The position numbers were made by a program, and so were the translations under genes. The notes beneath the pieces were generated by a model. It saw nothing but the letters and a program-made list of their open reading frames with translations, was not told where the DNA came from and did not search any database. 64,000 bases of DNA, taken from sequence record MW218148.1; one strand, 5' to 3'. Below are positions 15,673-29,419 of this stretch, in pieces (position 1 is the first letter of the stretch; each line of letters begins with the position of its first letter).

Positions 15673-18600
15673 TTACTTACCTGAGAAGATTGGAATAGCA
15701 GAACGAACATCAATATTGAAATGATCGCCATAAGCTCTATTGATAGCTTCTTGTAAATCAGGATTTCCTGTAGAAGGAGTAAATGGATCATTAGGGTTAG
15801 TAACGCTACCATTATTTCCATTATTTCCATTAGTGCCGTCATTACCATTGCTACCATTATTACTTCCATTTCCTCCAGTTCCATTAGAACCGTTAGAACC
15901 ATTATTTCCAGTACCATTACTTCCATTAGAACCGTTAGATCCATTAGATCCATTTGAACCATTGATACCGTCCATATTTTTAAGATTTTCTTTAATAATC
16001 TTTTCAAGTTCTTTATTTATAGATTTAACAATGACATTTCCTTTAGAATCTACTAAGTCGCCGTTCTTATTGATAGTTGTGTTATTGAATATATTGTCAC
16101 CTTTATTAATATTGGTATTATTTTTACCTTTAAATGACATTTTCTTAAGTTGTTCTAACATCTTAGCTGTATTCTTATCAATATTGCTAGTGTGTTTAGT
16201 AATTTCATCTAAATCTAAACGTTTTTGTTTATCTACTTGCATAGGGCCATTTTTATAGCTTACTGTAGAATTATTATAATTATTTGTAATATTGTAAATA
16301 TTTCTTACAGTATTGTTATTACCTTGAATGATTTGTTGAGAGTTATTACCCCCATTTGTAGAAGAACTGTTATTATAATTATTATTAATTACAGAAGAAT
16401 TATTATTATTTGTATTATTATTTGAAACAGAACTACTAGATCCAGAAGGAGTATTGTTACCAACATATTCTTTTGAATCACCTGAATCTGATGAAGATGG
16501 TGAACCTGAACTTGATCCATTTCCTGAATCTCCACCTTCAGAATCTTCTCCATCTGATCCACTTCCTGAATCTGATTCAGAGGAAGATTTGCCTGCTTTA
16601 GATTTAAGTTCTTCTTGCTGTTGTTGGTCAATTTTCTTAGCTTCTTCATAATCAATACCATAAATCTGAGCGTAACGTTTCATTAAACGATCATTTAATT
16701 CTTCTTGTTCATCTTCATCCATACGAGTATCGTCTCTACCGGTAATAGAACCATACCAAGTACCATTTTTAAAACTATATTCAGAAGCACCAGGAGATCC
16801 TTCTGCTGAAGATGAGGAACCTTCAGAGTCACCATCAACTGCTTCGGATCCTCCTCCACCGTATCTCATATAACCATCTATTCCCCATTTAGGGTTTTTA
16901 TATTTATCGGCACTATTGACAACAACACCTTCAACACCATTAGCTTCGACTTGTTTACCATTACCAATGTATAATGTTACGTGACCAATGTTATCACATA
17001 AAATAATATCTCCGACTTTTAAGTCACTAGGGTCTTTAGCTTTAATCTTCTTGAAAGGAGTTTCTCCATTCCAGAAAGTGTAAGTTGTTGCATTAATATT
17101 CATTTCTAAACCGGCTTTTTTGAATGCTCTGGCAATTAAACTAGAACAGTCAAATGAATTAGCTCCTTGACGGTTAGGTTGAGAATAAGAAGCACCTTTC
17201 TGAGCAACAGCCCATTTTACAGCTTTATTAATTTTAGCGGTTTCACTACCTTTACCGCCTCCACCACCGACAAACTGTTTAATAGGAGGGTTTCCTTTTA
17301 TTAAACCATTACTGCTATACTTCTTACCACTAGTAGTTTTAGACATATTTGAAAATTGTTCTAAAGAACCATCATCAATTATATATCCAAGACCTCCTCC
17401 ACCTTTTGATTTAGTGGATTTACTTTTACTTCCAGAACCACTGAATTTTTTGATATAAGAATTACCAGAAGAAATACGAGCACCTAAAGCTGGTACCCCT
17501 GCTCTTTCATACTTACTAACCCAAGAAGCTGCAGCGTCTCCTACAGAATTAGTTGTTTTAAGATGAGCAAGTGCTGCTGATTCAGATCCTTGTAATTCTT
17601 TCCACATATAATCTAATTGTAAGTCCAAGTCAGACCATTTCTTATTCTTTTCTTCAGCGTATTTCATTAATCCTTGTCTACGAGTGTTATCCCATTGAGC
17701 AATACCAATACCATATCCTGAGATAGAACTTTTAGCTTTACTTTCATCAAAAGCAACGTCACCTTGAACTCGATCTGATTGCATACCAGATTCGTGTGCA
17801 AAGTTACCCATTACACCAGCTACTTGTTCATCTGAAAGACCTTTATCTTTTAAGAAATTCCATATCTTTTCAGCGCCTTCTCCGTCAATAGATGAAGCAT
17901 CACTGCCTGAAGAGGATGCTGAACTATCTGATGATGAACCTGAGCTACCTGCCATAAAGCCGGCCATTATATCATTCATCATTCCACCAAGTTTATCGAA
18001 CCAATCTCCGATTTTGTTTACAACTTCCCCACCTGGATTAGCTATATCCATTTCAGATTTTTTCTTTTTCTTCTTACTTAATAAAGAATAAAAAGGAGAC
18101 ATACGCATCATAGTTTCAGCTAATTTCTTAGGAGTCTTTTTAAGTTTACTCATAAGGTTTTTAGGCATTAATTTATTCATTTGATGACCAATTCTACCCA
18201 TTACAGATAATGGAGAATCTTTCATAGCTCCATCTACATCTTTCTTAATAGAGTCTCTAGTTTTTCCGGCAGAATCTTCTACTTGTTTCTTAGCATCCTT
18301 ACTAGCTTTATCTGACATTCCTTGCATTTCAGCAATTTCTTTCTTAGCACGTTCAGAAGCTTCTCCTTCAATACCTTCTTGATATGAACTCAATTCTTCC
18401 TTACTAGCTTCAACCATTTCTTTACTTACATTACCCATTTCTTCTTCATGGTTTGAGAATTTGTCTTTAAGCCAGTTCCAACCAGATTTAATTAACCCAG
18501 TTCCGCCTTGAATTAAAGTTGATGTCATTCCTACTATATTACTTATACCTTTTCCTGCTAAGGCTAAAGGTGCCATCATTAACATAGAAGCTCCACCAAC

Positions 18601-21531
18601 AACTTTCTTAATCAAACCTCCAAAACCACTAGTTTTCTCTTCCATAGCAGCATCTGTTTGATCTCCAAAGCTCTTAGCCATACCAGTAGTCTTTTGAACC
18701 ATATTCATACCTAGTCCAAAAGCAGGTTTTACTATAGATTTGTATAGACCTACTCCTGCTAATCCTAATAAAGGAGAAGCGGCAAGTAAAGGATTATCTT
18801 TAATAAATCCTCCAATTAAAGTAGATTGTTCATTTCTTCCAGTCATCTTAGTGTCTACTAAAGGATCAACTGAGAAGTTTTCTCCTCCTGGTTGAGTTGA
18901 ATCTAATTTTTCTTGTTCATTTTTCTCTTTAGACGGATGATCATTGAAACCAATGATACTACCTAAAGTCTTGATAGGATGTTTTAAAGATTCAATAGGA
19001 TGAGATATAGTTCTAATAATATCTGGAGCAGCTAATGCCAATGATGCAACCTGACCAACTACAGGAATAGCATTTACTCCAACACGAGCACCTACTTTAA
19101 CTCCTGCTTTAAGTAATCCTTTACCTATAGCTTTTTTAGCACCTTTTCCAGCAGCCATTCTAGTAGCTCTAGCTTTAAGTTTTCCTTTAAGTCTACTACC
19201 TGCACCAGCCATTAAAGCTCCACTAGCAGCAAATTTACCACCTAAAGATCCACCCATACTAGTTATTTTACTACCCATCTTAGTATTAGAAAAAGCACCG
19301 AATTTAGTTTTAGAAAAGTCTTTAACTTTATTTTTGTATTTATCAAAATGTTTCTTAACAGTTTTGTTTTTATCTGCAAATTCTTCAAATGACTCGTAAC
19401 CGTCTGCAAGTGTATCTCCGAAATTAGAATTATCTTCTTCAGAAGCTTTTGCTTGACCAGATTCACCTAAAGGTTTATCAATAATAGTTGAACCTTTGTT
19501 TTCATCAGAACTTTTATTAATTTGTTTTTCTTCAGGTTTATTATTTGATGCAGATGTATTGGACTTAGATTCTGATTGACGACTACTAGATTGATTTAAA
19601 TCTTCTCTAGGATCAATCTCTTTAGATGTATTAGGCTTATCAGAAGATACAGATTGATTAACAATATCTGATTGAGAACTATTTCCAGTATAATTATTAA
19701 AGCTTTCAGGAATTTTACTATTAATTCTAGATACAATATCTTTAATTTCACTTATATCTTTATTAATGATATTAAAGTTAATTCCATCATATACAGAATC
19801 TTTACTTCCTTTAATAATACTACTTGACGAATCATTATTGATCTTAGGAGTAATATTTCTAGAAGTTCCTTTTCTCACATTTTCATCATTAATAGCATTG
19901 ATAGTACTTCCATCAAGACCTTTTCTAATATTCTTAGATTCTTTATTAAGCATCATTCTAGTTTTAGTTAAACTAGTCATTGCTTCTTGATCTCCGAATA
20001 CTTTATCCAATAAAGTGTTTAATGGATCATTTGTATCTCCACTCTTAACTTTACCTAAGTCTTTACTGTTATTTACATTTTTAGAGATAATGTCCTTGAT
20101 AGTACTTTTAACTTTATCATCTTCAATATTGATATCCAAATCTTTAGCAGTATTACTAAATTCTTTCATGAAAGGTGAGTTATTTATAGTATCATTAATT
20201 TTCTTTTCTATATCATCTTTAATGACTTTAGAAGTTTTAAATCCACCTGAGCTATAATCATAATGAATTTCTTGACCGTCTTCAGAAGTTAAACCTACTA
20301 TTTTAGATAAATAACCGGGTATAACTGTATTTAATGTATTATGAGTTTCAACATCGAAAGCAACTTTCTGATGTTTATTATTTCTATTGGCTGTAGAAAT
20401 ACCACCAGTTACGCCTTCAAATAATTTATCTATTAATTTAGATTTACCTTTCTTAAGATCTTTAAGTAAGTCTTCTTCATTTTTCTTTCTTTTTGCTTCA
20501 GCTGCATCTACTTTACCTTGTTCTGTTGATCTGAAAGGATTAAGTTTGTTAATATGAGTACTTTTCTTAACCATTTTTTCAAGAAATGAGTCATTGTTAT
20601 TGAGAAAATCAAAAGCTTTACCTTTAGCTATATCAACTAAACCTAATTTTTTTATACCTTTTTTGCCAAAAGTATCTTTAATTAATTCTATACCTTTTTC
20701 CTTAGCAAAATCAATTGCTTTTTCTTTTAGACCTTCTCTATTAGAATCGTCAAGCAAATTTGAAAGGGTTATATTGGATAAAAATAGATCTTCTAATGAG
20801 TTACTATTTTTAATTTCAGATATATTTTTTACCTTAGTATTTTGTCTAATACTGTTACTAGTCTTAATAAGACCATTTAGGTTTTCGAATATACTTTGTC
20901 TAATCTCATCATTAGCTTCTCTCATTGTATTAAGATTAGTAATCATACTAGTAAAACCAGTTGAGTTAATTTGAGATAGGTTTGAGACTGATGAAGTTAA
21001 TAAAGCTGAAGCTCTTGCAGAAGAGGCATCACCATTAACAATTGTAGTTGAGCTAACTATTTTTGATTTATTATCTTCTTTTTCATCAAAGTCATCAAAT
21101 TCAAAGTCACCGTCACCTGAATCAAAGCTATCATCACTATCAAAGTCACCAAAGCTATCATCAAAGTCAAAATCATCACCCATATCCATGTCCATATCCA
21201 TACCCATGCTAGTAACATCTTTAATACCTTTTTTATCTTGTATCGTATTACCGGTTTTTAAGGTATTTTTAGTTGCTTTTAGGGTTTCTTTAGATAATTC
21301 TTTGGTAGAGTCAGTTATTTGTTGAAGTTGTTTTTTCTTCTTGTTTTTTAATTCTCTAACAGCTTTAAGTGGATTATTTTGATCCATAATACGTTTCATT
21401 TCATTTGATTGCATTGCATGTAAATTCTTATTGAATTCATTATCTATAAGTTTCCTAGAAGATTTAGAGGAGGAGTTATTTTTAAACTCCCTCTCCATCT
21501 TACCAGTACTAAATTTTTTATCTTTAGCCAA
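15673..21531 (-). CDS. Tape-measure-like tail protein with phage-tail lysozyme, NlpC/P60 and C-terminal Gly-Ser-Asn repeats
   Basis: TTG start with GGAGGTG. IWNFL..GLS.EQVAGVMGNFAHES...GIAQW (lysozyme, about 17450-17870); FDCSSL...GHVTLYIGNG (NlpC/P60, about 16860-17235). Confidence 0.8.
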   Translation of the reverse strand: MAKDKKFSTGKMEREFKNNSSSKSSRKLIDNEFNKNLHAMQSNEMKRIMDQNNPLKAVRELKNKKKKQLQQITDSTKELSKETLKATKNTLKTGNTIQDKKGIKDVTSMGMDMDMDMGDDFDFDDSFGDFDSDDSFDSGDGDFEFDDFDEKEDNKSKIVSSTTIVNGDASSARASALLTSSVSNLSQINSTGFTSMITNLNTMREANDEIRQSIFENLNGLIKTSNSIRQNTKVKNISEIKNSNSLEDLFLSNITLSNLLDDSNREGLKEKAIDFAKEKGIELIKDTFGKKGIKKLGLVDIAKGKAFDFLNNNDSFLEKMVKKSTHINKLNPFRSTEQGKVDAAEAKRKKNEEDLLKDLKKGKSKLIDKLFEGVTGGISTANRNNKHQKVAFDVETHNTLNTVIPGYLSKIVGLTSEDGQEIHYDYSSGGFKTSKVIKDDIEKKINDTINNSPFMKEFSNTAKDLDINIEDDKVKSTIKDIISKNVNNSKDLGKVKSGDTNDPLNTLLDKVFGDQEAMTSLTKTRMMLNKESKNIRKGLDGSTINAINDENVRKGTSRNITPKINNDSSSSIIKGSKDSVYDGINFNIINKDISEIKDIVSRINSKIPESFNNYTGNSSQSDIVNQSVSSDKPNTSKEIDPREDLNQSSSRQSESKSNTSASNNKPEEKQINKSSDENKGSTIIDKPLGESGQAKASEEDNSNFGDTLADGYESFEEFADKNKTVKKHFDKYKNKVKDFSKTKFGAFSNTKMGSKITSMGGSLGGKFAASGALMAGAGSRLKGKLKARATRMAAGKGAKKAIGKGLLKAGVKVGARVGVNAIPVVGQVASLALAAPDIIRTISHPIESLKHPIKTLGSIIGFNDHPSKEKNEQEKLDSTQPGGENFSVDPLVDTKMTGRNEQSTLIGGFIKDNPLLAASPLLGLAGVGLYKSIVKPAFGLGMNMVQKTTGMAKSFGDQTDAAMEEKTSGFGGLIKKVVGGASMLMMAPLALAGKGISNIVGMTSTLIQGGTGLIKSGWNWLKDKFSNHEEEMGNVSKEMVEASKEELSSYQEGIEGEASERAKKEIAEMQGMSDKASKDAKKQVEDSAGKTRDSIKKDVDGAMKDSPLSVMGRIGHQMNKLMPKNLMSKLKKTPKKLAETMMRMSPFYSLLSKKKKKKSEMDIANPGGEVVNKIGDWFDKLGGMMNDIMAGFMAGSSGSSSDSSASSSGSDASSIDGEGAEKIWNFLKDKGLSDEQVAGVMGNFAHESGMQSDRVQGDVAFDESKAKSSISGYGIGIAQWDNTRRQGLMKYAEEKNKKWSDLDLQLDYMWKELQGSESAALAHLKTTNSVGDAAASWVSKYERAGVPALGARISSGNSYIKKFSGSGSKSKSTKSKGGGGLGYIIDDGSLEQFSNMSKTTSGKKYSSNGLIKGNPPIKQFVGGGGGKGSETAKINKAVKWAVAQKGASYSQPNRQGANSFDCSSLIARAFKKAGLEMNINATTYTFWNGETPFKKIKAKDPSDLKVGDIILCDNIGHVTLYIGNGKQVEANGVEGVVVNSADKYKNPKWGIDGYMRYGGGGSEAVDGDSEGSSSSAEGSPGASEYSFKNGTWYGSITGRDDTRMDEDEQEELNDRLMKRYAQIYGIDYEEAKKIDQQQQEELKSKAGKSSSESDSGSGSDGEDSEGGDSGNGSSSGSPSSSDSGDSKEYVGNNTPSGSSSSVSNNNTNNNNSSVINNNYNNSSSTNGGNNSQQIIQGNNNTVRNIYNITNNYNNSTVSYKNGPMQVDKQKRLDLDEITKHTSNIDKNTAKMLEQLKKMSFKGKNNTNINKGDNIFNNTTINKNGDLVDSKGNVIVKSINKELEKIIKENLKNMDGINGSNGSNGSNGSNGSNGTGNNGSNGSNGTGGNGSNNGSNGNDGTNGNNGNNGSVTNPNDPFTPSTGNPDLQEAINRAYGDHFNIDVRSAIPIFSGK

Positions 21532-21555: not shown

Positions 21556-24500
21556 TTACTTTAATTCTTCTAGTAAACGATCTAATTCTTTAGTAGAAGC
21601 AAATGTATTTCTATCTATATTAGCTAACATTTTAACTAAATCATCTGAATACCATAGTTTTTCATAGTCATAAGTATAACCTGAATTACCATTTTCTATT
21701 TTAGAATTTTTGTGATTATTTACTATCTTATTATAATGGTTAGTTACTCTATTATTTCCATTAATAAATTCTTGATTAACTGTTCCACCATTTATAACAC
21801 TACTATTGTTATTTGTAGTATTATTTTGATTATTATTTCTGTTTTGATTTGAGAATCCGCTATTATTTAATGTAGGTAAGTTAACACTACTTCCAGTTGT
21901 TGGAGAGTTACCAACGCTACTTGATGAATCGTTTTTATCTTTAGATATTTCTGCAGTAGATTTATCTCCAGAAGAATCTTTTCCTTCATCATCTCCAGAA
22001 TCAGAACCAGAACTAGAGCTTTCTTCACTTGAACCTGATTTAGATTTAAGTTTTTCTTGCTGTTCTTGGTCTATTTTCTTAGCTTCTTCATAATCAATAC
22101 CATATATTCTAGCATAACGTTTTAACAGTCTATCGTTAAGCTCTTCTTGTTCATCTTCATCCATACGAGTATCATCTCTACCTGTTATTGAACCATACCA
22201 AGTACCATTTTTAAAACTATATTCTGAAGCTCCAGCAGAACTTCCTGATGAAGATGATCCACTATCTTCAGATGATGACTCATCAGTATCTTTTTCATCT
22301 TTAGAAGAATCCTTAGATTTAGAATCATTATCCTTACTCTTACCAGTTAATTTCTCTTTTGCTTTTTCAACAATATTTTTAGCAGAACTTAGAGTATTGC
22401 CTACAACATCTTTTACTTTTCCAATTGCATTTCCTACTTTTTCTTTAAGGTCTCCTAATCCAGATCCTCCTCCAATCATAGGTGCAATATTATCTCTAAT
22501 TAATCTAACTAATTTCATTCTACCATTGTTATTTAACATATAACCAGAACCATCATCTTTAATCAATGAATCATTTGCAATAGAGTTCCAGTTTATTATA
22601 TTTCTAGCAACAGAGTTTATACTTTCATTAGTTCCATTAACTAAAAGAGTTTTATCCATTAAGCTTGATTTTCTAATTGAGAAATAACTGTTTACAAAGA
22701 ATACTTCAGCATTACTATACATAGACATGATATCTTCCACTTCACCAGTAGAAAGACCACCGTTGATACCTAATTGGACGATTACAGCTACACCATTTCT
22801 GTTATATTCATTTCTATTTTCCATTAAGGCATCTTTACCACCATTATCGTAAGATCGTTTCAATTCAGTATCAATTTTAATTCCCTTAATTAATTTAGAT
22901 AAATCTGGTGCCATATCTTTACCTATTTCATCACCTATAAATAGGACTTTTGAGAATTTGTTTGAAGATTTTACCATACCACTATTTAAAGTAGATTTTT
23001 TATCTTTTAAATAGTTTGATACTTTATTGTGAATTTTCTTAGATAACTGTTTTACTCTAAATGTATCGTCTTTGCTTTCTTGCATTATTTCTTTTTCTTC
23101 TGCTTTTATCTCTCTTTTTTGTTGTAATACTTGAGCTTTCTGGAATCTTCTTCTTTCTCTAGCTTGTTTCTCTAGATCTTTCTGGAATGAAGGAGAATTC
23201 ATAATACCTACAAGAGAAGCTCCTCCGCCTTTCTTAGGATCACTCTTCTTAGCATTACTACCTTTATCACCGTCTGAATCTTTATCCTCACTCTTTTTAC
23301 TTGATACCTTACCCCAAATAAATGGTTCAGGTCTTATTGCAGTTTCATTTGAAGGACTGCCTTTCATTACTTGGAAGTGAAGATGTGCACCTTTTGCACC
23401 AGAACCTGTTTCACCAGATAAACCAATTTTATCTCCGACCTTAATAGTGTCTCCGACTTTAACCATTTTGTTGTTGGATAAATGCATATACCAAGTATAA
23501 ATATTACCACTTTTTATTTCAACATAATTACCGCCAACAGGTTCAGAGAATATTTTACTAACTTTACCAGGAACTATTGCATAAACCGTAGTTCCGGTAG
23601 GCATACCAATATCAATACCGGCATGGGAACTACCTAATGCACCAACGAAACCAGCTTTATATTTACCATATGGTTGCCAGAATTGGTGAGATCTTAACCA
23701 AGCACCCGCTCTGTCTGAAGGTATTTTCTTCATAGCAGCCACATTATCATTTGCAGAGAATGATGGAGCACTATTATCAGGTTTAAAACCTTCACCAGTT
23801 ACAACACCGCTACCATCGTCTGAACTACCAGAATCTCCGTCAGAACCTCCAGAAGATGAATTTTTCATCCTAGACATTGCAACTACCATTTCTTCCATTT
23901 TAACTAAGAATCTAGAGAACCATTCACCAATTTCTCCTCCACCTTTTTTAGAGAAGTCTATTCCACCTTTAGCTATTTGGTATAAACTTCCTATTGGAGA
24001 ATTCATAAACATTTCTTTTTGAATATTCTCTTCTTCCTTAGGACCTGATTTCATTTTATTATCAGTGATAGTCTTAAACATATCTCCGCCAACTTTAGCT
24101 AATGGGAACATAGGAGAAGCTCTGAACATAAGTTTAGTTGTGCTTAAAATCATTCTACCTAAACCTGTTTTATCTTCAGTATGTTTCTCTTCTTTACTCT
24201 TAGCTTCATCTTCTACTTTATCACCAGGATGTTCACCGATACCAAAGAAACTACCTAGAGTTTTTATAGGATGTTTTAGTGATTCAATAGGATGTTTAAT
24301 AGTCTTGATAATATCAGGAGCCCATAAAGCTGCACCAACAATTGGTCCAACAACTGGTATGAATGGTAATGCTGTTTTAAGACCGGCTTTTAATGCAAAT
24401 TTTCCTCCAGCTTTAGCTGCACCTTTACTAAATAGTTTATTTTTAGCCTTACCTAATAAACCTAAAGCTTTTCCACCAAATCCTTTAGCTTTACTAAATA

Positions 24501-27500
24501 AACCTTTACCAATAGACTTAACGTTCTTAGTTGCTTTAGATGCAAATTTACTTAATCCTTTAGCTGCAGTACTAGCATTTTTACGATTAAATATTTTTTG
24601 GAATCCTTTAGCTGCTACTTTACCAATAGATTTACCTAATTTAACTCCACCCTTGATAATTCCAGCACCTTTACCTATGACAGCTTTACCTAAGTCTTTT
24701 GTCATACCTAAAGCTTTTCCACCAAATTTACCAACAGTTTTAAATACGTTACCTATATTCTTAGGAATTCCTTTTATACCTTTAAATAATTTACCTAAAC
24801 CTAATTTACCTGCAACATTTTTAATGCCACTACCAATAGACATTAAACCTTTAGGTAGACCTGTGAAGAATTTTCCTACAACACCTGGTAGTAATTTACT
24901 TATTAATGCAGGACCAAATTTAGCTGCAAGGAATCCACCAGCACCTAACATAGCGGCTTTACCTAAGAATCCGCCAGCAGATTTTAAGAAACCTTTCTTT
25001 TCTTCACCGTCTTTCCCAGATTTACCTTTCATCAATGAAGCTAATACAGTTGCAGAAGTTCCAGCAAATAATACTGGACCCATTTTACTGAAATCTAACA
25101 TACCATTCATCATTTTCTTAGTACCTATAGATTTTTCAGCTTCTCCACCTTTGCCAAAATTAACACTACCTCTTAGCATTTCCATTGTTTTCTGTTTGTT
25201 AGAACCAGTCATTTGAGACATTACATTCTCTCCGACTTTACCGGCTTCAGCTGTAGATAATCCTTGCTTCATTCTTTCTAAAGCTCCATCATCATTTGAT
25301 TCTTCCATATCTTTTCTAAGATTAGCATTATTGCCAAAAGCAACACCTGCAAGACCTAATATAAAGCTTTTAGCCTTCTTTTGTTTTTCTTCTTTAGAAA
25401 GATCATCTAAAGTTTTATCCGGAGCTTTATTAGGATCAATTTGTGTAGGATTTAATTTATTACTTATTTTACTTAATTGAGGTATACTATTAAATATATC
25501 CATTATAGGATTTGAATCAATGATTTGTGATTTATTTAAATTATGAGTTCCAGGAGTAACGTTACTAGGAATATCCTGACTAACATTAGGTTCTTTATTA
25601 ATTAAGTTTGAAGATACATCTTTTAAAATACTCTTAGGATCTTCTTTATACTCTTTAAATTTATTAACTGCATTTGATAATGAATTAATCTTATCTAATA
25701 TATTTCTATGATCCTGATTAGGTATATTAGCATCTTTGTTAATGATGTCTTTAGTGATTGGGAAGCTCTTACCTTTTTCAATAACGCTATTAATCTTATC
25801 GATTTTTTCATTTACAAAATCTTTATTTTGATTAATATTACTTCTACTGAAGTCATTATTTAACTTATTCTCTATTTCTAAGAATAGTTTTTTAAGTTCA
25901 TTAAGGTCATCATTTTTCCATTCAATATCACCAAAATCTTTTATTTGGTTTACATTATCATTATTATCCGATACAGAGTAAGTTGAACCTTTAGCTTTAT
26001 TAACTCCATCTATTTCAGTAAATGACATTATTCTAGAATTAACGTTTTTATCCATAGTTCTACTTACTGAATCTTTAATCTTAAATAAATCAGTATTAAA
26101 CCTAGAAGCATTCTTCTCGAATATTTCTGCTAATGATTCTGTATTCTCATCAATCCTATTATCTTTTAATATCTTTTTAAGACCTTCAGTATCTTTTATA
26201 GTTTTATTTATCTTAGTAAGATCGACTAGGACTTCTTTAGTTCTATCTTCATCACCAGAAAATTTATCAAGTAACTCTTTACCGAGGAATGTATCTTTGA
26301 AGTTAAAGATTGATTTATCTTTAATTTTTTCTCTTTCTTTTCTTCTAGCAGTTCCTCTTTCTTCCCAAGTACCTTTTTCATAGTTAAAAATACTACCTAA
26401 ATCAGCAGTATCGGCTAATCCACCAGATCTTCCTTCTCTTTGTGCTATTAAATTACCTTGAAGTCTAGATAATAAATCCGGTATAGCTTTATTAATACTT
26501 GTATGAGTTAATTGGTCAAAGTCGACTGGTGTATCTTTCTTACGTTTATTCTTTAAAGAAATTCCACCCTTACCGTCACCAATAAGTTCTCCTTTGAATT
26601 CATTTAACTTATTAGTAAGAGCTCCACCTAAACCTGAAATAATTCTATTATCACTACCACTTAAACTTTCTAGACCTCTATTAATTTTACCATCTTCATT
26701 TAAAGTTCTATTAATTAATAGTGATCCTATATTTTCAGGATCAAATCTTTTATTCAGTCTAGTGAATATATTTGTATTACTTCCTTCAGGATCATATCCA
26801 CCTATATCACCATAAAGAAGTTTATTAAAAGCAAGTTTAGCTCCTTGAGTTGCAGCGAACTCAATAGGGTTTTTAGCTACACCCATTAACATTGTCTTTA
26901 ATTGTTCACCAGACATCATACCCATCAATAAGTTTTCTGGATTTGTTTTTTCATCTAGATATTTTAATAAACTTACATTACCTTTTAATATTGAATGAAG
27001 TTTACTTTGTTTGTCTCTTTTAGTATTTTCTTCCAGTAATGTATTTTGGTATATATTATCTTGTATAGTTATTAAAGTTGATAAACCTGAATCAACTAAA
27101 GAATTAGTTGCTTGAAGTGATAAAGAGTAATTGCTTAACGCAATATTAGTCCCTGTAAAACCTCTTTGGTTTATATCAACTAAATTATTCATTGCCACTA
27201 AAGGTGAATTAGTTATCTTAGATTGTTTTTTATCTGATAAACTAATAATTTCAGACTTAGTTCCGTCAGAGTTATCAATATAATCAGTTACTGATTCATA
27301 TTCAGGTTTTTCATTAGAAAGTTTTTCATTAGAATCTGAAAATGTATCATTTTCTTTAGACTTATCTTTTAAAGTCTTAATTAAATCACTAGTAGAACCT
27401 TTAACTTCCGTGAAGTTTTTTAATCTTCTTTCTTCGTTATTAAATAACTTTAAACCAGAATCACCTATGACAGCATCTAAAGCAGGATTTGACTTTATAA

Positions 27501-27618
27501 ATGCGTTAAGTAAAATACGACCTGTATTTTTAGAAGCATTACGTATAATAACTGAATTATTATTTTTCTCTAACTGCCTAATATTCTTTTTATTTTTATT
27601 TCTGTTATTCTTAGCCAA
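21556..27618 (-). CDS. Tape-measure-like tail protein with M23 peptidase and degenerate SGNH/OatA-like domain
   Basis: TTG start with GGAGGTG. HAGID...YMHL...HLHF (M23, about 23320-23700); VLFIGDE...VIVQLGING (about 22490-22955); long Gly/Lys amphipathic repeat region. Confidence 0.8.
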   Translation of the reverse strand: MAKNNRNKNKKNIRQLEKNNNSVIIRNASKNTGRILLNAFIKSNPALDAVIGDSGLKLFNNEERRLKNFTEVKGSTSDLIKTLKDKSKENDTFSDSNEKLSNEKPEYESVTDYIDNSDGTKSEIISLSDKKQSKITNSPLVAMNNLVDINQRGFTGTNIALSNYSLSLQATNSLVDSGLSTLITIQDNIYQNTLLEENTKRDKQSKLHSILKGNVSLLKYLDEKTNPENLLMGMMSGEQLKTMLMGVAKNPIEFAATQGAKLAFNKLLYGDIGGYDPEGSNTNIFTRLNKRFDPENIGSLLINRTLNEDGKINRGLESLSGSDNRIISGLGGALTNKLNEFKGELIGDGKGGISLKNKRKKDTPVDFDQLTHTSINKAIPDLLSRLQGNLIAQREGRSGGLADTADLGSIFNYEKGTWEERGTARRKEREKIKDKSIFNFKDTFLGKELLDKFSGDEDRTKEVLVDLTKINKTIKDTEGLKKILKDNRIDENTESLAEIFEKNASRFNTDLFKIKDSVSRTMDKNVNSRIMSFTEIDGVNKAKGSTYSVSDNNDNVNQIKDFGDIEWKNDDLNELKKLFLEIENKLNNDFSRSNINQNKDFVNEKIDKINSVIEKGKSFPITKDIINKDANIPNQDHRNILDKINSLSNAVNKFKEYKEDPKSILKDVSSNLINKEPNVSQDIPSNVTPGTHNLNKSQIIDSNPIMDIFNSIPQLSKISNKLNPTQIDPNKAPDKTLDDLSKEEKQKKAKSFILGLAGVAFGNNANLRKDMEESNDDGALERMKQGLSTAEAGKVGENVMSQMTGSNKQKTMEMLRGSVNFGKGGEAEKSIGTKKMMNGMLDFSKMGPVLFAGTSATVLASLMKGKSGKDGEEKKGFLKSAGGFLGKAAMLGAGGFLAAKFGPALISKLLPGVVGKFFTGLPKGLMSIGSGIKNVAGKLGLGKLFKGIKGIPKNIGNVFKTVGKFGGKALGMTKDLGKAVIGKGAGIIKGGVKLGKSIGKVAAKGFQKIFNRKNASTAAKGLSKFASKATKNVKSIGKGLFSKAKGFGGKALGLLGKAKNKLFSKGAAKAGGKFALKAGLKTALPFIPVVGPIVGAALWAPDIIKTIKHPIESLKHPIKTLGSFFGIGEHPGDKVEDEAKSKEEKHTEDKTGLGRMILSTTKLMFRASPMFPLAKVGGDMFKTITDNKMKSGPKEEENIQKEMFMNSPIGSLYQIAKGGIDFSKKGGGEIGEWFSRFLVKMEEMVVAMSRMKNSSSGGSDGDSGSSDDGSGVVTGEGFKPDNSAPSFSANDNVAAMKKIPSDRAGAWLRSHQFWQPYGKYKAGFVGALGSSHAGIDIGMPTGTTVYAIVPGKVSKIFSEPVGGNYVEIKSGNIYTWYMHLSNNKMVKVGDTIKVGDKIGLSGETGSGAKGAHLHFQVMKGSPSNETAIRPEPFIWGKVSSKKSEDKDSDGDKGSNAKKSDPKKGGGASLVGIMNSPSFQKDLEKQARERRRFQKAQVLQQKREIKAEEKEIMQESKDDTFRVKQLSKKIHNKVSNYLKDKKSTLNSGMVKSSNKFSKVLFIGDEIGKDMAPDLSKLIKGIKIDTELKRSYDNGGKDALMENRNEYNRNGVAVIVQLGINGGLSTGEVEDIMSMYSNAEVFFVNSYFSIRKSSLMDKTLLVNGTNESINSVARNIINWNSIANDSLIKDDGSGYMLNNNGRMKLVRLIRDNIAPMIGGGSGLGDLKEKVGNAIGKVKDVVGNTLSSAKNIVEKAKEKLTGKSKDNDSKSKDSSKDEKDTDESSSEDSGSSSSGSSAGASEYSFKNGTWYGSITGRDDTRMDEDEQEELNDRLLKRYARIYGIDYEEAKKIDQEQQEKLKSKSGSSEESSSSGSDSGDDEGKDSSGDKSTAEISKDKNDSSSSVGNSPTTGSSVNLPTLNNSGFSNQNRNNNQNNTTNNNSSVINGGTVNQEFINGNNRVTNHYNKIVNNHKNSKIENGNSGYTYDYEKLWYSDDLVKMLANIDRNTFASTKELDRLLEELK

Positions 27619-27767: not shown

Positions 27768-28418
27768 TTATTTATACTTAACTACTTCTTGAATCTTTCC
27801 TATTACTTTGTTTAAGTCTTTAGCCAATACAAATCTTCCAAATAGGATACTCATTAAAGATAGTATTGTAATGTGATTATTTTTAAATATCGCAAATACA
27901 ATACGTCTTGAATCTTCTTTGCTGATTTCTTCTTTATCTTGATGATATTTTCTATTAGGGATTAATCTTCTATTACCACCTAAAGTATCCACGACAATTT
28001 TATTAATAGCGTCTTTCGCTTTATTGTAAATGTCAATATTATACACTTCAGTTCCATCATTTAGTATGAACTGTCTAGTAAAGTTAATATCTTCTCTTTC
28101 AAGTAAATCTTTTTCATACTTTTCCATTAGTGTTGAATTAATAGAAATCAAGTATAAAATGATATCTAACAATTCTAAAGATGCTTCGGATAGAGCCTCT
28201 GGTAAATTTGCTTTATCATTATCTGCTTTATCAACGATATTAAGAATTTCATTATTAAATTCATGAATTTCTTCTACTACCTGAGGAATAAATCTATCCA
28301 TCATCTGATACAATTCTTCCTGTCCAAAATCATATTTGTTAATTACATTGACATGATTTTCATACATTGATTTTAGATCAATTGCAATACCTTCTTTTTT
28401 TCTATAGAAATGCTTCAT
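27768..28418 (-). CDS. All-alpha NTP pyrophosphatase (MazG/dimeric dUTPase-like superfamily)
   Basis: VVEEIHEF...ELLDIILY, matching the EExxE...ExxD acidic metal-binding motif. Confidence 0.6.
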   Translation of the reverse strand: MKHFYRKKEGIAIDLKSMYENHVNVINKYDFGQEELYQMMDRFIPQVVEEIHEFNNEILNIVDKADNDKANLPEALSEASLELLDIILYLISINSTLMEKYEKDLLEREDINFTRQFILNDGTEVYNIDIYNKAKDAINKIVVDTLGGNRRLIPNRKYHQDKEEISKEDSRRIVFAIFKNNHITILSLMSILFGRFVLAKDLNKVIGKIQEVVKYK

Positions 28419-28440: not shown

Positions 28441-29355
28441 TTATTTGTATTTCTTTTTAAATGCAGCTTCATAATTTTTATTAACTTCATCAAGTTTAAT
28501 TTCTTTACCATCTTTAGTTTTAAAAGTATTTTTGTCAATCTCTTCACCTTTAATAACTTCTTTATCTTCATTCTCAACCTTAGCTGTCATAACTACATGT
28601 GGAGGTACAAATGAAGCTTCTTTAATTGTATCCATTTTAGCATTATGAATACGACCTTTAATTAATTTACGAGAGAAGTTAATCTTAGTCATAGTTAATG
28701 TTTTACCTTGTACTAATGCTTTTTCTCTAAGTGTATCAATTTCATTGATAATAGCACTTAATTCTTTCTTAGTATAATCATTACCATTTTCTAAGTTGAT
28801 TAATAAATCATTGATTAGTTCTTCTTTAGTATAAGATTTCTCATTGAATTTTTTAGCTACTGTTTTCTTCTTAGTCATTTTCTTTTTACCGTCCTTTTTA
28901 GTTGTTTTAGTTTTACTTTCTTTACTAACTTTTACTGGATTTTTAACTTCCTCAAGTTTAACTTCTTCTTTTTCAACTTCTTCTTTTTTATCTTCTTCTG
29001 GTTTAACATCTTCTTGAAGTTTCTTAATCTTCTCTGGATGTGCTCCTGAAGCTGTTACTGTGACTGTGTCGTAAGTGTCTGAAGTTGGAATATCTTTTAG
29101 ATTAATTTCCACATCAGTTAAATCATCTGAATTGATGTAGATTTCTGATTTCTCATAATTAATCTTAATAACATCATCATTTTCAGGAATTAAAACTAAA
29201 TTCTTTTGCTTATCATATTTCTCAGGAATAGTTTCAATTTCAAAAGTAATTACATCACCTTTATATCCCCATTCTTCAGACAAATTAAGCTTAGCTGATT
29301 CTAATACACTTAAATCCTCTTTTTCCTTAGTTACCTTTCTTCTTGTAATAGCCAT
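28441..29355 (-). CDS. HU/TF1-like DNA-binding protein with long N-terminal extension
   Basis: AAGGA RBS supports ATG 29355. C-terminal TKEELI...TKKELSAII...ALVQGKTL...VPPHVV fits the HU fold. Confidence 0.6.
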   Translation of the reverse strand: MAITRRKVTKEKEDLSVLESAKLNLSEEWGYKGDVITFEIETIPEKYDKQKNLVLIPENDDVIKINYEKSEIYINSDDLTDVEINLKDIPTSDTYDTVTVTASGAHPEKIKKLQEDVKPEEDKKEEVEKEEVKLEEVKNPVKVSKESKTKTTKKDGKKKMTKKKTVAKKFNEKSYTKEELINDLLINLENGNDYTKKELSAIINEIDTLREKALVQGKTLTMTKINFSRKLIKGRIHNAKMDTIKEASFVPPHVVMTAKVENEDKEVIKGEEIDKNTFKTKDGKEIKLDEVNKNYEAAFKKKYK

Positions 29356-29419
29356 TATCCTTATCGTCTCCTTATATAAAAATTTTGAAGTTAATATTAA
29401 TCTTACTAACTTCAATAAA

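Follow-up and report, generated by a model that had tools for sequence, protein, structure and literature searches.

In lysostaphin-type enzymes, an M23 endopeptidase is combined with a separate cell-wall-targeting module, which in lysostaphin is an SH3b domain, unrelated in fold to the SGNH domains considered here. The extracytoplasmic C-terminal domain of the peptidoglycan O-acetyltransferase OatA from Staphylococcus aureus (SaOatA-C; PDB 6VJP and 6WN9) is an SGNH domain with a compact fold of about 155 residues, in which Blocks I, II, III and V follow one another. Catalysis in every member of the SGNH family depends on the Ser of Block I, and the activity of SaOatA-C is abolished by replacing the Asn of Block III (reviewed in PMC9487903). 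An SGNH fold is also present at the C-terminus of a staphylococcal phage tail protein, Tal (gp59) of the S. aureus siphophage 80alpha, and in its phi11 counterpart; the domain of 80alpha is thought to help wall penetration, its activity being likewise unproven (PMC7048315). Here, we describe an SGNH domain of the OatA-C type with degenerate catalytic residues, a putative pseudo-esterase, in the tail tape measure protein (ORF155) of a jumbo Staphylococcus phage, and we propose that it may serve as a non-catalytic wall-binding module for the neighbouring M23 peptidase. The analysed DNA is a stretch of 64 kb with a G+C content of 27%, referred to as the window, and the part of it that was searched, positions 21556-27618, is a 100% match to Staphylococcus phage vB_StaM_SA1 (MW218148.1). 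SA1 is a 260.7-kb jumbo myovirus from pig-farm sewage, isolated on S. lentus.

An earlier note, made from the letters of the window, had placed a catalytically degenerate OatA-like SGNH domain at positions 22490-22955, downstream of an M23 peptidase. The bounds derived from our structural model are almost identical (22483-22956), and an intact M23 domain precedes the SGNH domain in the protein (residues 1331-1420; Pfam, E 3.9e-23). The motifs on which that proposal was based all occur in the given order on the minus strand within residues 1557-1707 (window 22498-22950): KVLFIGDE stands at residues 1557-1564 (22927-22950) and MKLVRLI at residues 1701-1707 (22498-22518), with IKID, VIVQLGINGG, EVFFVN, INWNSIA and DDGSGYMLNNNG falling between them. 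A single-sequence search of the PDB with the piece downstream of M23 returned two chains only, 6wn9 and 6vjp, at E 1.8e-4. With a profile of four phage copies (SA1 and three related phages), the same two chains were matched at E 1.4e-14 over chain residues 6-152 of 159, and SaOatA-C was the sole PDB match past E 0.01. The likeness of the SA1 domain to OatA is far beyond chance, at a sequence identity to SaOatA-C of about 20-25%. The isolated 201-residue piece gave no Pfam match even at E 10, as the Pfam family models miss the compact SGNH subfamily of the SA1 domain, and NCBIfam matches to macrolide esterases were rejected as noise (E 3e-4, 20 bits against a cut-off of 450).

An AlphaFold (AF2) model computed from the single sequence had a predicted local distance difference test score (pLDDT) of 47 and was unusable, and we used a model based on an alignment of 25 sequences instead. 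This model has a mean pLDDT of 85, with values above 90 for most of residues 28-182 of the 201-residue piece and a dip to about 87 near residues 121-130. Its strands and helices follow the order expected of the SGNH fold, three alpha/beta/alpha layers around a central, parallel, five-stranded sheet. When the model was compared with the PDB using Foldseek, as the earlier note had suggested, the best four matches were SaOatA-C chains (top E 3.3e-10 with a template modelling (TM) score of 0.78; range 0.75-0.79 on the target). These were followed by Campylobacter Cj0610c, PatB and then general GDSL esterases, with the OatA domain of S. pneumoniae at rank 20. Altogether there were 52 PDB matches at E<=1e-3, of which the best 50 are SGNH/GDSL-type entries or designed scaffolds of that fold. 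Residues 1555-1712 are predicted from this model to form an SGNH fold. Among solved structures, SaOatA-C is its nearest relative, whether judged by sequence or by fold.

To compare the active-site residues with those of relatives, we used an exhaustive HMMER search of 1.84 billion representative proteins, which gave 26 relatives at E<=1e-3. They comprise proteins of about 600 residues with an AT3 domain followed by a C-terminal SGNH domain, which is the OatA architecture (the N-terminal AT3 domain, PF01757, is present in P0007, P0008 and P0010), short stand-alone proteins, and large multidomain proteins. The domain from 24 matches outside the jumbo phages was aligned with the phage copies, and 23 of these were scored, since one ends before Block V. 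None of these relatives lacks the Ser of Block I, the Asn of Block III, or the Asp or His of Block V (23/23 for each), while the Thr preceding the Block III Asn occurs in 20/23 and the Arg after Block II in 22/23.

In the SA1 domain, the nucleophile Ser is replaced by Glu1564, as the earlier note had read it, the Block V His, which the note had found missing, by Met1694, and the Block III Thr by Ile1618. The Gly of Block II, which serves the oxyanion hole through its backbone amide, has become Lys at a position where the relatives have Gly or Ser, followed by Arg, and this Arg is kept. Block I also keeps its Gly-Asp, Block III its Leu-Gly-x-Asn-Gly, and Block V its Asp and Gly, and a conserved Trp is still present; Asn1619 is invariant across all alleles and relatives. 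Between Asp1689 and Met1694, a two-residue insertion in Block V is shared with the S6-type allele described below and with the relative P0024. Compared with SaOatA-C, the order of the Blocks and the compact fold are the same, and the Asp four residues past the nucleophile position, which in SaOatA holds the active-site water (PMC9487903), is also present. In contrast to SaOatA-C, the SA1 protein lacks an AT3 membrane domain by Pfam, the SGNH domain is embedded in a tail protein of 2020 residues, phage-specific insertions lengthen the Block II and Block V loops, and Ser, His, Thr and the Block II Gly are substituted by Glu, Met, Ile and Lys, respectively. Because of these substitutions, and since the family depends on the Ser of Block I, the SA1 domain is predicted to be incapable of the canonical esterase or transferase mechanism. 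O-acetyltransferase activity on C6 of N-acetylmuramic acid (MurNAc) is unlikely, judged by sequence, as there is no nucleophile, no base and no acetyl-donating partner domain.

The SGNH domain occupies an equivalent position in the orthologous proteins of ten jumbo Staphylococcus phages, in four alleles. Phages S6, Madawaska, MarsHill, PALS_2 and UFV_DC4 (loci L004 and L006-L009) share one allele, which is identical in amino acid sequence in all five and keeps the Ser, Thr, Asn and His. In Machias, AH12 and PB50, the Ser, Thr and His positions are occupied by Glu, Leu and Met; the corresponding residues are Asp, Met and Thr in LY01, and Glu, Ile and Met in SA1. We refer to these three alleles as dead. 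The Block III Asn and the Block V Asp are invariant in all three. Like the SA1 domain, the S6-type domain lies downstream of M23 in the orthologous tape measure protein and contains the two-residue Block V insertion, but it has an intact set of catalytic residues, is 37% identical to the SA1 domain, and has Gly rather than Asp four residues after the Ser. It looks catalytically competent, is a candidate virion-associated wall esterase, and is mentioned in no genome annotation.

Word-indexed protein searches, with the SGNH piece and with the whole protein limited to this region, found the query itself only, and no additional relatives came to light when IMG/VR and JGI metagenome contigs were scanned using the alignment of the four phage copies. 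The sample therefore consists of the ten phage genomes with their four alleles. When a neighbour-joining tree was built that included the outside relatives, SA1, Machias and LY01 clustered in 200/200 bootstraps, on a long branch, and Machias paired with LY01 in 192/200. This fits one inactivation event in a common ancestor of the SA1, Machias-type and LY01 alleles, with a later loss of the Block V insertion in the Machias and LY01 alleles and its retention in SA1. Inactivation driven by the host, with the dead allele occurring only where the host does not O-acetylate its wall, is unsupported: Machias, AH12, PB50 and LY01 were all isolated on S. aureus, as were phages with the intact allele.

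The replacement residues raise the question of whether the dead domain is still an enzyme, in which a carboxylate (Glu, Glu or Asp) at the nucleophile position supports another hydrolytic, or a metal-dependent, chemistry on a wall polymer. In favour of this, each of the dead alleles has an acidic residue there, neither the Asn nor either of the Asp residues has been lost, and SaOatA-C can hold a Zn ion, going by the title of entry 6wn9. However, the general base His is gone and its replacements are inconsistent (Met, Met, Thr), the Block III Thr has become three different hydrophobic residues, and catalysis throughout the family depends on the Block I Ser (PMC9487903). Glu and Asp codons are one base apart, so that the shared acidity may reflect shared descent. 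We also looked for a substitute nucleophile or base conserved in the dead clade alone and found nothing convincing. We consider a remaining enzymatic activity very improbable.

Despite the loss of the catalytic residues, the domain appears to be maintained. Between Machias and AH12, the SGNH domain has 9 differences at 97 synonymous sites and 0 at 380 nonsynonymous sites; under neutrality, the probability that all nine are synonymous is 6e-7. The N-terminal 1200 residues of the same pair differ by 104 synonymous and 102 nonsynonymous changes (Fisher P = 0.004 against the SGNH domain). In every comparison, the SGNH domain is better conserved than both flanking linkers, for example 50% against 42% and 28% between SA1 and Machias. 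The dead domain is, as judged from the Machias lineage, kept under purifying selection rather than decaying. Loss of catalytic residues together with purifying selection on fold and sequence, the latter shown in the Machias lineage, is what marks a pseudoenzyme.

Tape measure proteins tolerate and accumulate inserted domains, and the dead domain could be a structural relic without a ligand, kept as folded mass or length for tail assembly, or because its removal would disturb the M23 cassette. At greater depth, between Machias and LY01, the ratio of nonsynonymous to synonymous substitution rates (dN/dS) is 0.35 in the SGNH domain and 0.10 in M23, which indicates that some constraint was relaxed when catalysis was lost. 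The long branch of the dead clade and the additional loss of the Block II Gly in SA1 agree with such a relic. On the other hand, the absence of nonsynonymous changes between Machias and AH12 does not, and the Asn of Block III and the Asp of Block V, active-site loop residues that the fold by itself does not require, are invariant in the three dead alleles. The linkers on either side show free variation in both sequence and length, and hence there is no tight constraint on length as such. A structural relic is unlikely in our assessment.

The part of the protein that bears the enzymes, about residues 1200-1800 (window 22000-24000, minus strand), differs in its history from the rest (loci L002-L004 and L006-L011). 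In the first 1200 residues, LY01 shares 91% identity with the S6 group, whereas its M23 and SGNH domains are 87% and 56% identical to those of Machias and only 56% and 35% identical to those of S6. SA1 is intermediate, with a backbone that is 72% S6-like and a cassette nearer to that of Machias. This mismatch of backbone and cassette in LY01 and SA1 implies that M23 and SGNH act as an exchangeable cassette, and the sequences point to modular exchange inside the tape measure gene, in which M23, linker and SGNH are inherited together. Pseudoenzymes commonly regulate neighbouring active domains, and the joint movement of the two domains as one recombining unit, as in LY01, would suit an intramolecular regulator that docks on the adjacent M23 and holds it inactive in the tail until ejection. 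Nothing specific supports this, the S6-type allele with its intact triad occupies the same place next to M23, and the two domains are separated by a poorly conserved linker of about 135 residues. Such regulation seems to us quite improbable.

The intact relatives outside the jumbo phages give an indication of what the domain did before it was inactivated. SGNH domains with intact triads are found together with a Phage_lysozyme2 muramidase (P0024), with CHAP (P0018), with VanY in a protein that matches a tape measure PHROG (P0026), and, in two copies, with an SLT transglycosylase (P0019); these lysozyme, SLT, CHAP and VanY fusions occur in phage-like proteins. The closest intact relatives outside the jumbo phages are P0003, P0006 and the members of their clusters, proteins of 1500-1660 residues with the SGNH domain at the N-terminus. 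Their genes adjoin those for an AAA ATPase, a MobL relaxase and a VirD4/TraG coupling protein, a conjugative-element context, which suggests that the SGNH domain may also serve Gram-positive conjugation machines. Two such genes are located at 10001-14989 of L014 and 3277-7833 of L015 and encode proteins of 1518 and 1662 residues. All of these proteins share the subfamily of the SA1 domain and its setting beside wall hydrolases or in a DNA-transfer machine; they differ in that all keep Ser, Asn and His, and none is from a jumbo Staphylococcus phage. A recent capture of oatA from the host was also considered and rejected, because SaOatA-C and the SA1 domain share no more than about 20-25% identity and nearer relatives reside in other mobile elements.

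The wall-hydrolase-fused and conjugative relatives are without AT3, and thus none is supplied with acetyl groups. 6-O-acetylation of MurNAc blocks lysozymes (PMC3492699). We propose that the ancestral domain, having no AT3 partner to supply acetyl groups, was not a transferase but would have been a de-O-acetylase of the wall glycan, aiding a muramidase or transglycosylase partner, and that it was carried along with domains that cut peptidoglycan, as part of machines driving DNA across Gram-positive walls. In the SA1 lineage, the domain would no longer remove acetyl groups and would have taken on a non-catalytic role. Most likely, it would hold or position the ejected C-terminal cassette of M23 and SGNH on a glycan strand, in the manner of a cell-wall-targeting module. 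We give this proposal as a whole, from ancestral de-O-acetylase to a pseudoenzyme that binds the wall and positions the ejected cassette, a probability of roughly 50%. Replaced chemistry residues, preserved cleft loops and selection are together the usual signature of a pseudoenzyme that retains its ligand site, and the M23 domain beside it is intact, with both metal-binding motifs, and is inherited with it. The arrangement would be functionally analogous to that of the lysostaphin type, in which M23 is likewise followed by a non-catalytic module that holds it on the staphylococcal wall, with an SH3b domain there and, in the proposed binding role, an SGNH domain here.

A more specific form of binding had been put forward in the earlier note, namely that the dead domain is a lectin-like reader of 6-O-acetyl-MurNAc that steers M23 and the lysozyme of a paralogous protein to O-acetylated, lysozyme-resistant wall. 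The paralog, ORF154, does contain a lysozyme domain (Phage_lysozyme2, Pfam). The parent fold acts on the acetyl chemistry of MurNAc C6 (PMC9487903), the residues framing the acetyl pocket (the oxyanion-hole Asn and the Asp residues of Blocks I and V) are kept, and SA1 also plates on strains of S. aureus and S. epidermidis, which are O-acetylated species. However, the proposal fits poorly with S. lentus as the isolation and propagation host, a species reported, in the summary that PMC3492699 gives of Bera et al. 2006, to be hypersensitive to lysozyme and grouped with species without O-acetylated muramic acid. In addition, the longer, charged side chain of Glu in place of the nucleophile would project into the acetyl pocket, and the distribution of dead versus intact alleles does not follow the host, since phages isolated on S. 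aureus include carriers of each. O-acetylated MurNAc is also a poor substrate for muramidases, and steering without acetyl removal would bring no evident benefit. We regard acetyl-specific steering as doubtful.

Several observations weigh against a wall-binding and positioning module, too. Binding by the SA1 domain, whether to acetylated or to plain MurNAc, is something we infer. The SGNH domain has evolved about three times faster than M23 between Machias and LY01, which fits relaxed constraint, and its conservation could reflect the needs of folding or assembly rather than ligand binding. A close relative of the allele of SA1 itself was absent from all collections searched (word-indexed, HMMER, IMG/VR and JGI), and selection on it is therefore argued by extension from the sister lineage; we infer constraint on this allele from its intact reading frame, its confident fold and its membership of the clade. 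The acidic residue shared by the dead alleles could mean a different chemistry rather than none. Finally, the published liquid chromatography-mass spectrometry table of SA1 virions, a shallow survey that covers sheath and capsid proteins well, has no peptide values for ORF155 or for ORF154, and the ortholog is not among the 15 virion proteins listed for UFV_DC4 in a similarly shallow survey. Presence in the virion thus rests on annotation and gene position, and the description of ORF155 as a tail lytic protein in the earlier note is reasonable by annotation, while the peptide table adds nothing to it. In the transcriptome paper of SA1 (PMC9414953), structural genes fall into the late class; ORF155 is not named there.

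The features of the locus are collected in Table 1. Orthologs in six related genomes carry the tape measure annotation, and PHROG tape measure families match ORF155 at the M23 region. ORF155 belongs to the type of tape measure protein with a hydrolase, being very long, located in the tail module, and equipped with a peptidoglycan hydrolase domain toward the C-terminal part; M23 is the only Pfam domain found in its 2020 residues. The surrounding genes encode ribonucleotide reductase, tail sheath, tail tube, a Dda-like helicase and a baseplate wedge protein. The published annotation gives a TTG start codon for both giant open reading frames (21556-27618 and 15673-21531).

Table 1. Features of the tape measure locus of phage SA1; positions refer to the window
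Feature	Residues	Position	Strand	Evidence or remark
Tail tape measure protein, ORF155 (QPI17074.1)	2020	21556..27618	-	Open reading frame list, 100% match to MW218148.1, annotation, PHROG tape measure matches
SGNH domain of OatA-C type with degenerate catalytic residues (putative pseudo-esterase)	1555-1712	22483..22956	-	PDB profile match, AF2 model, Foldseek; bounds from model
Block I nucleophile position	Glu1564	22927..22929	-	SA1 reads Gly-Asp-Glu; Ser in 23/23 relatives outside the dead clade
Block III	Ile1618-Asn1619	22762..22767	-	Family Thr (20/23) replaced by Ile; oxyanion-hole Asn (23/23) kept
Block V loop	Asp1689, Met1694	22537..22554	-	Asp kept; Met at catalytic His position (His in 23/23 relatives)
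Peptidase M23 domain	1331-1420	23359..23628	-	Pfam 3.9e-23; NCBIfam MepM/ShyA-type matches; both metal-binding motifs present
Lys/Gly-rich region	about 880-1104	24307..24981	-	Shared with paralog ORF154 at 37% identity
67-residue segment of ORF155	1796-1862	22033..22233	-	93% identical to residues 1581-1647 of ORF154
Paralogous tail protein ORF154, 'tail lysin' in related genomes	1952	15673..21531	-	Pfam, annotations; directly downstream of ORF155
Phage_lysozyme2 in ORF154	1220-1363	17443-17874	-	Pfam
NlpC/P60 in ORF154	1457-1542	16906-17163	-	Pfam

The end of the Lys/Gly-rich region, residues 1080-1104, provides the sole strongly hydrophobic 19-residue window of ORF155. A 383-residue open reading frame on the opposite strand (24065-25216, plus) lies wholly within the Lys/Gly-rich part of ORF155 and is most likely a by-product of biased composition, not a gene. 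Directly upstream of the tape measure gene, two small open reading frames (27768-28418 and 28441-29415, both on the minus strand) keep their position in all related phages; they could be assigned to no family, with only a weak PHROG match of unknown function, and their position would suit tail assembly chaperones. The 67-residue segment stands out, since the paralogs ORF155 and ORF154 are only 25-37% alike outside it. It is the best-kept long stretch of the C-terminal half among the ten phages, with 83-100% identity between any two of them, and the last 20 or so residues alone are as well kept. Its dN/dS is 0.05-0.11 in divergent phage pairs, and close pairs have zero nonsynonymous changes. 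Searches of the PDB and Pfam gave no match to the segment. It could represent a docking or assembly motif common to the two paralogs, or else a place where gene conversion has occurred.

That phage tails can carry SGNH domains is already known, and BFVD matches show such domains to be common in phage tail proteins; hydrolase domains in tape measure proteins are routine. Tal differs from the SA1 protein in that its domain belongs to the general GDSL/SGNH esterase-lipase group, not to the OatA-C subfamily, in that it is a baseplate hub and not a tape measure protein, and in that there is no report of missing catalytic residues. The genome papers of SA1, of MarsHill, Madawaska and Machias, and of DC4 report M23 alone or no domain in the tape measure protein, and a text search of the literature found no description of an OatA-type domain in such a protein. 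We suggest that the domain be added to the annotation of the ten genomes, with the S6-type copy marked as a candidate virion-associated esterase.

The intact-looking allele of the S6 group and its selected but dead counterpart in SA1, Machias and LY01 occupy corresponding positions in orthologous proteins. They form a natural pair and a clean comparative system, which bears on what a virion-borne wall esterase does and on what a pseudo-esterase is kept for. As an accessory domain shared for crossing peptidoglycan, the SGNH domain links phage tails with Gram-positive conjugation proteins. Tentatively, we speculate that jumbo Staphylococcus phages may exchange two versions of the cassette within their tape measure protein, M23 with a working de-O-acetylase of the OatA type and M23 with a dead copy that has become a novel type of peptidoglycan-binding module, a possibility to which we attach limited weight. 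If this is true, wall-targeting modules would have a source that had gone unrecognised, the fold of the OatA C-domain, and which allele a phage carries would correspond to its way of handling acetylated walls.

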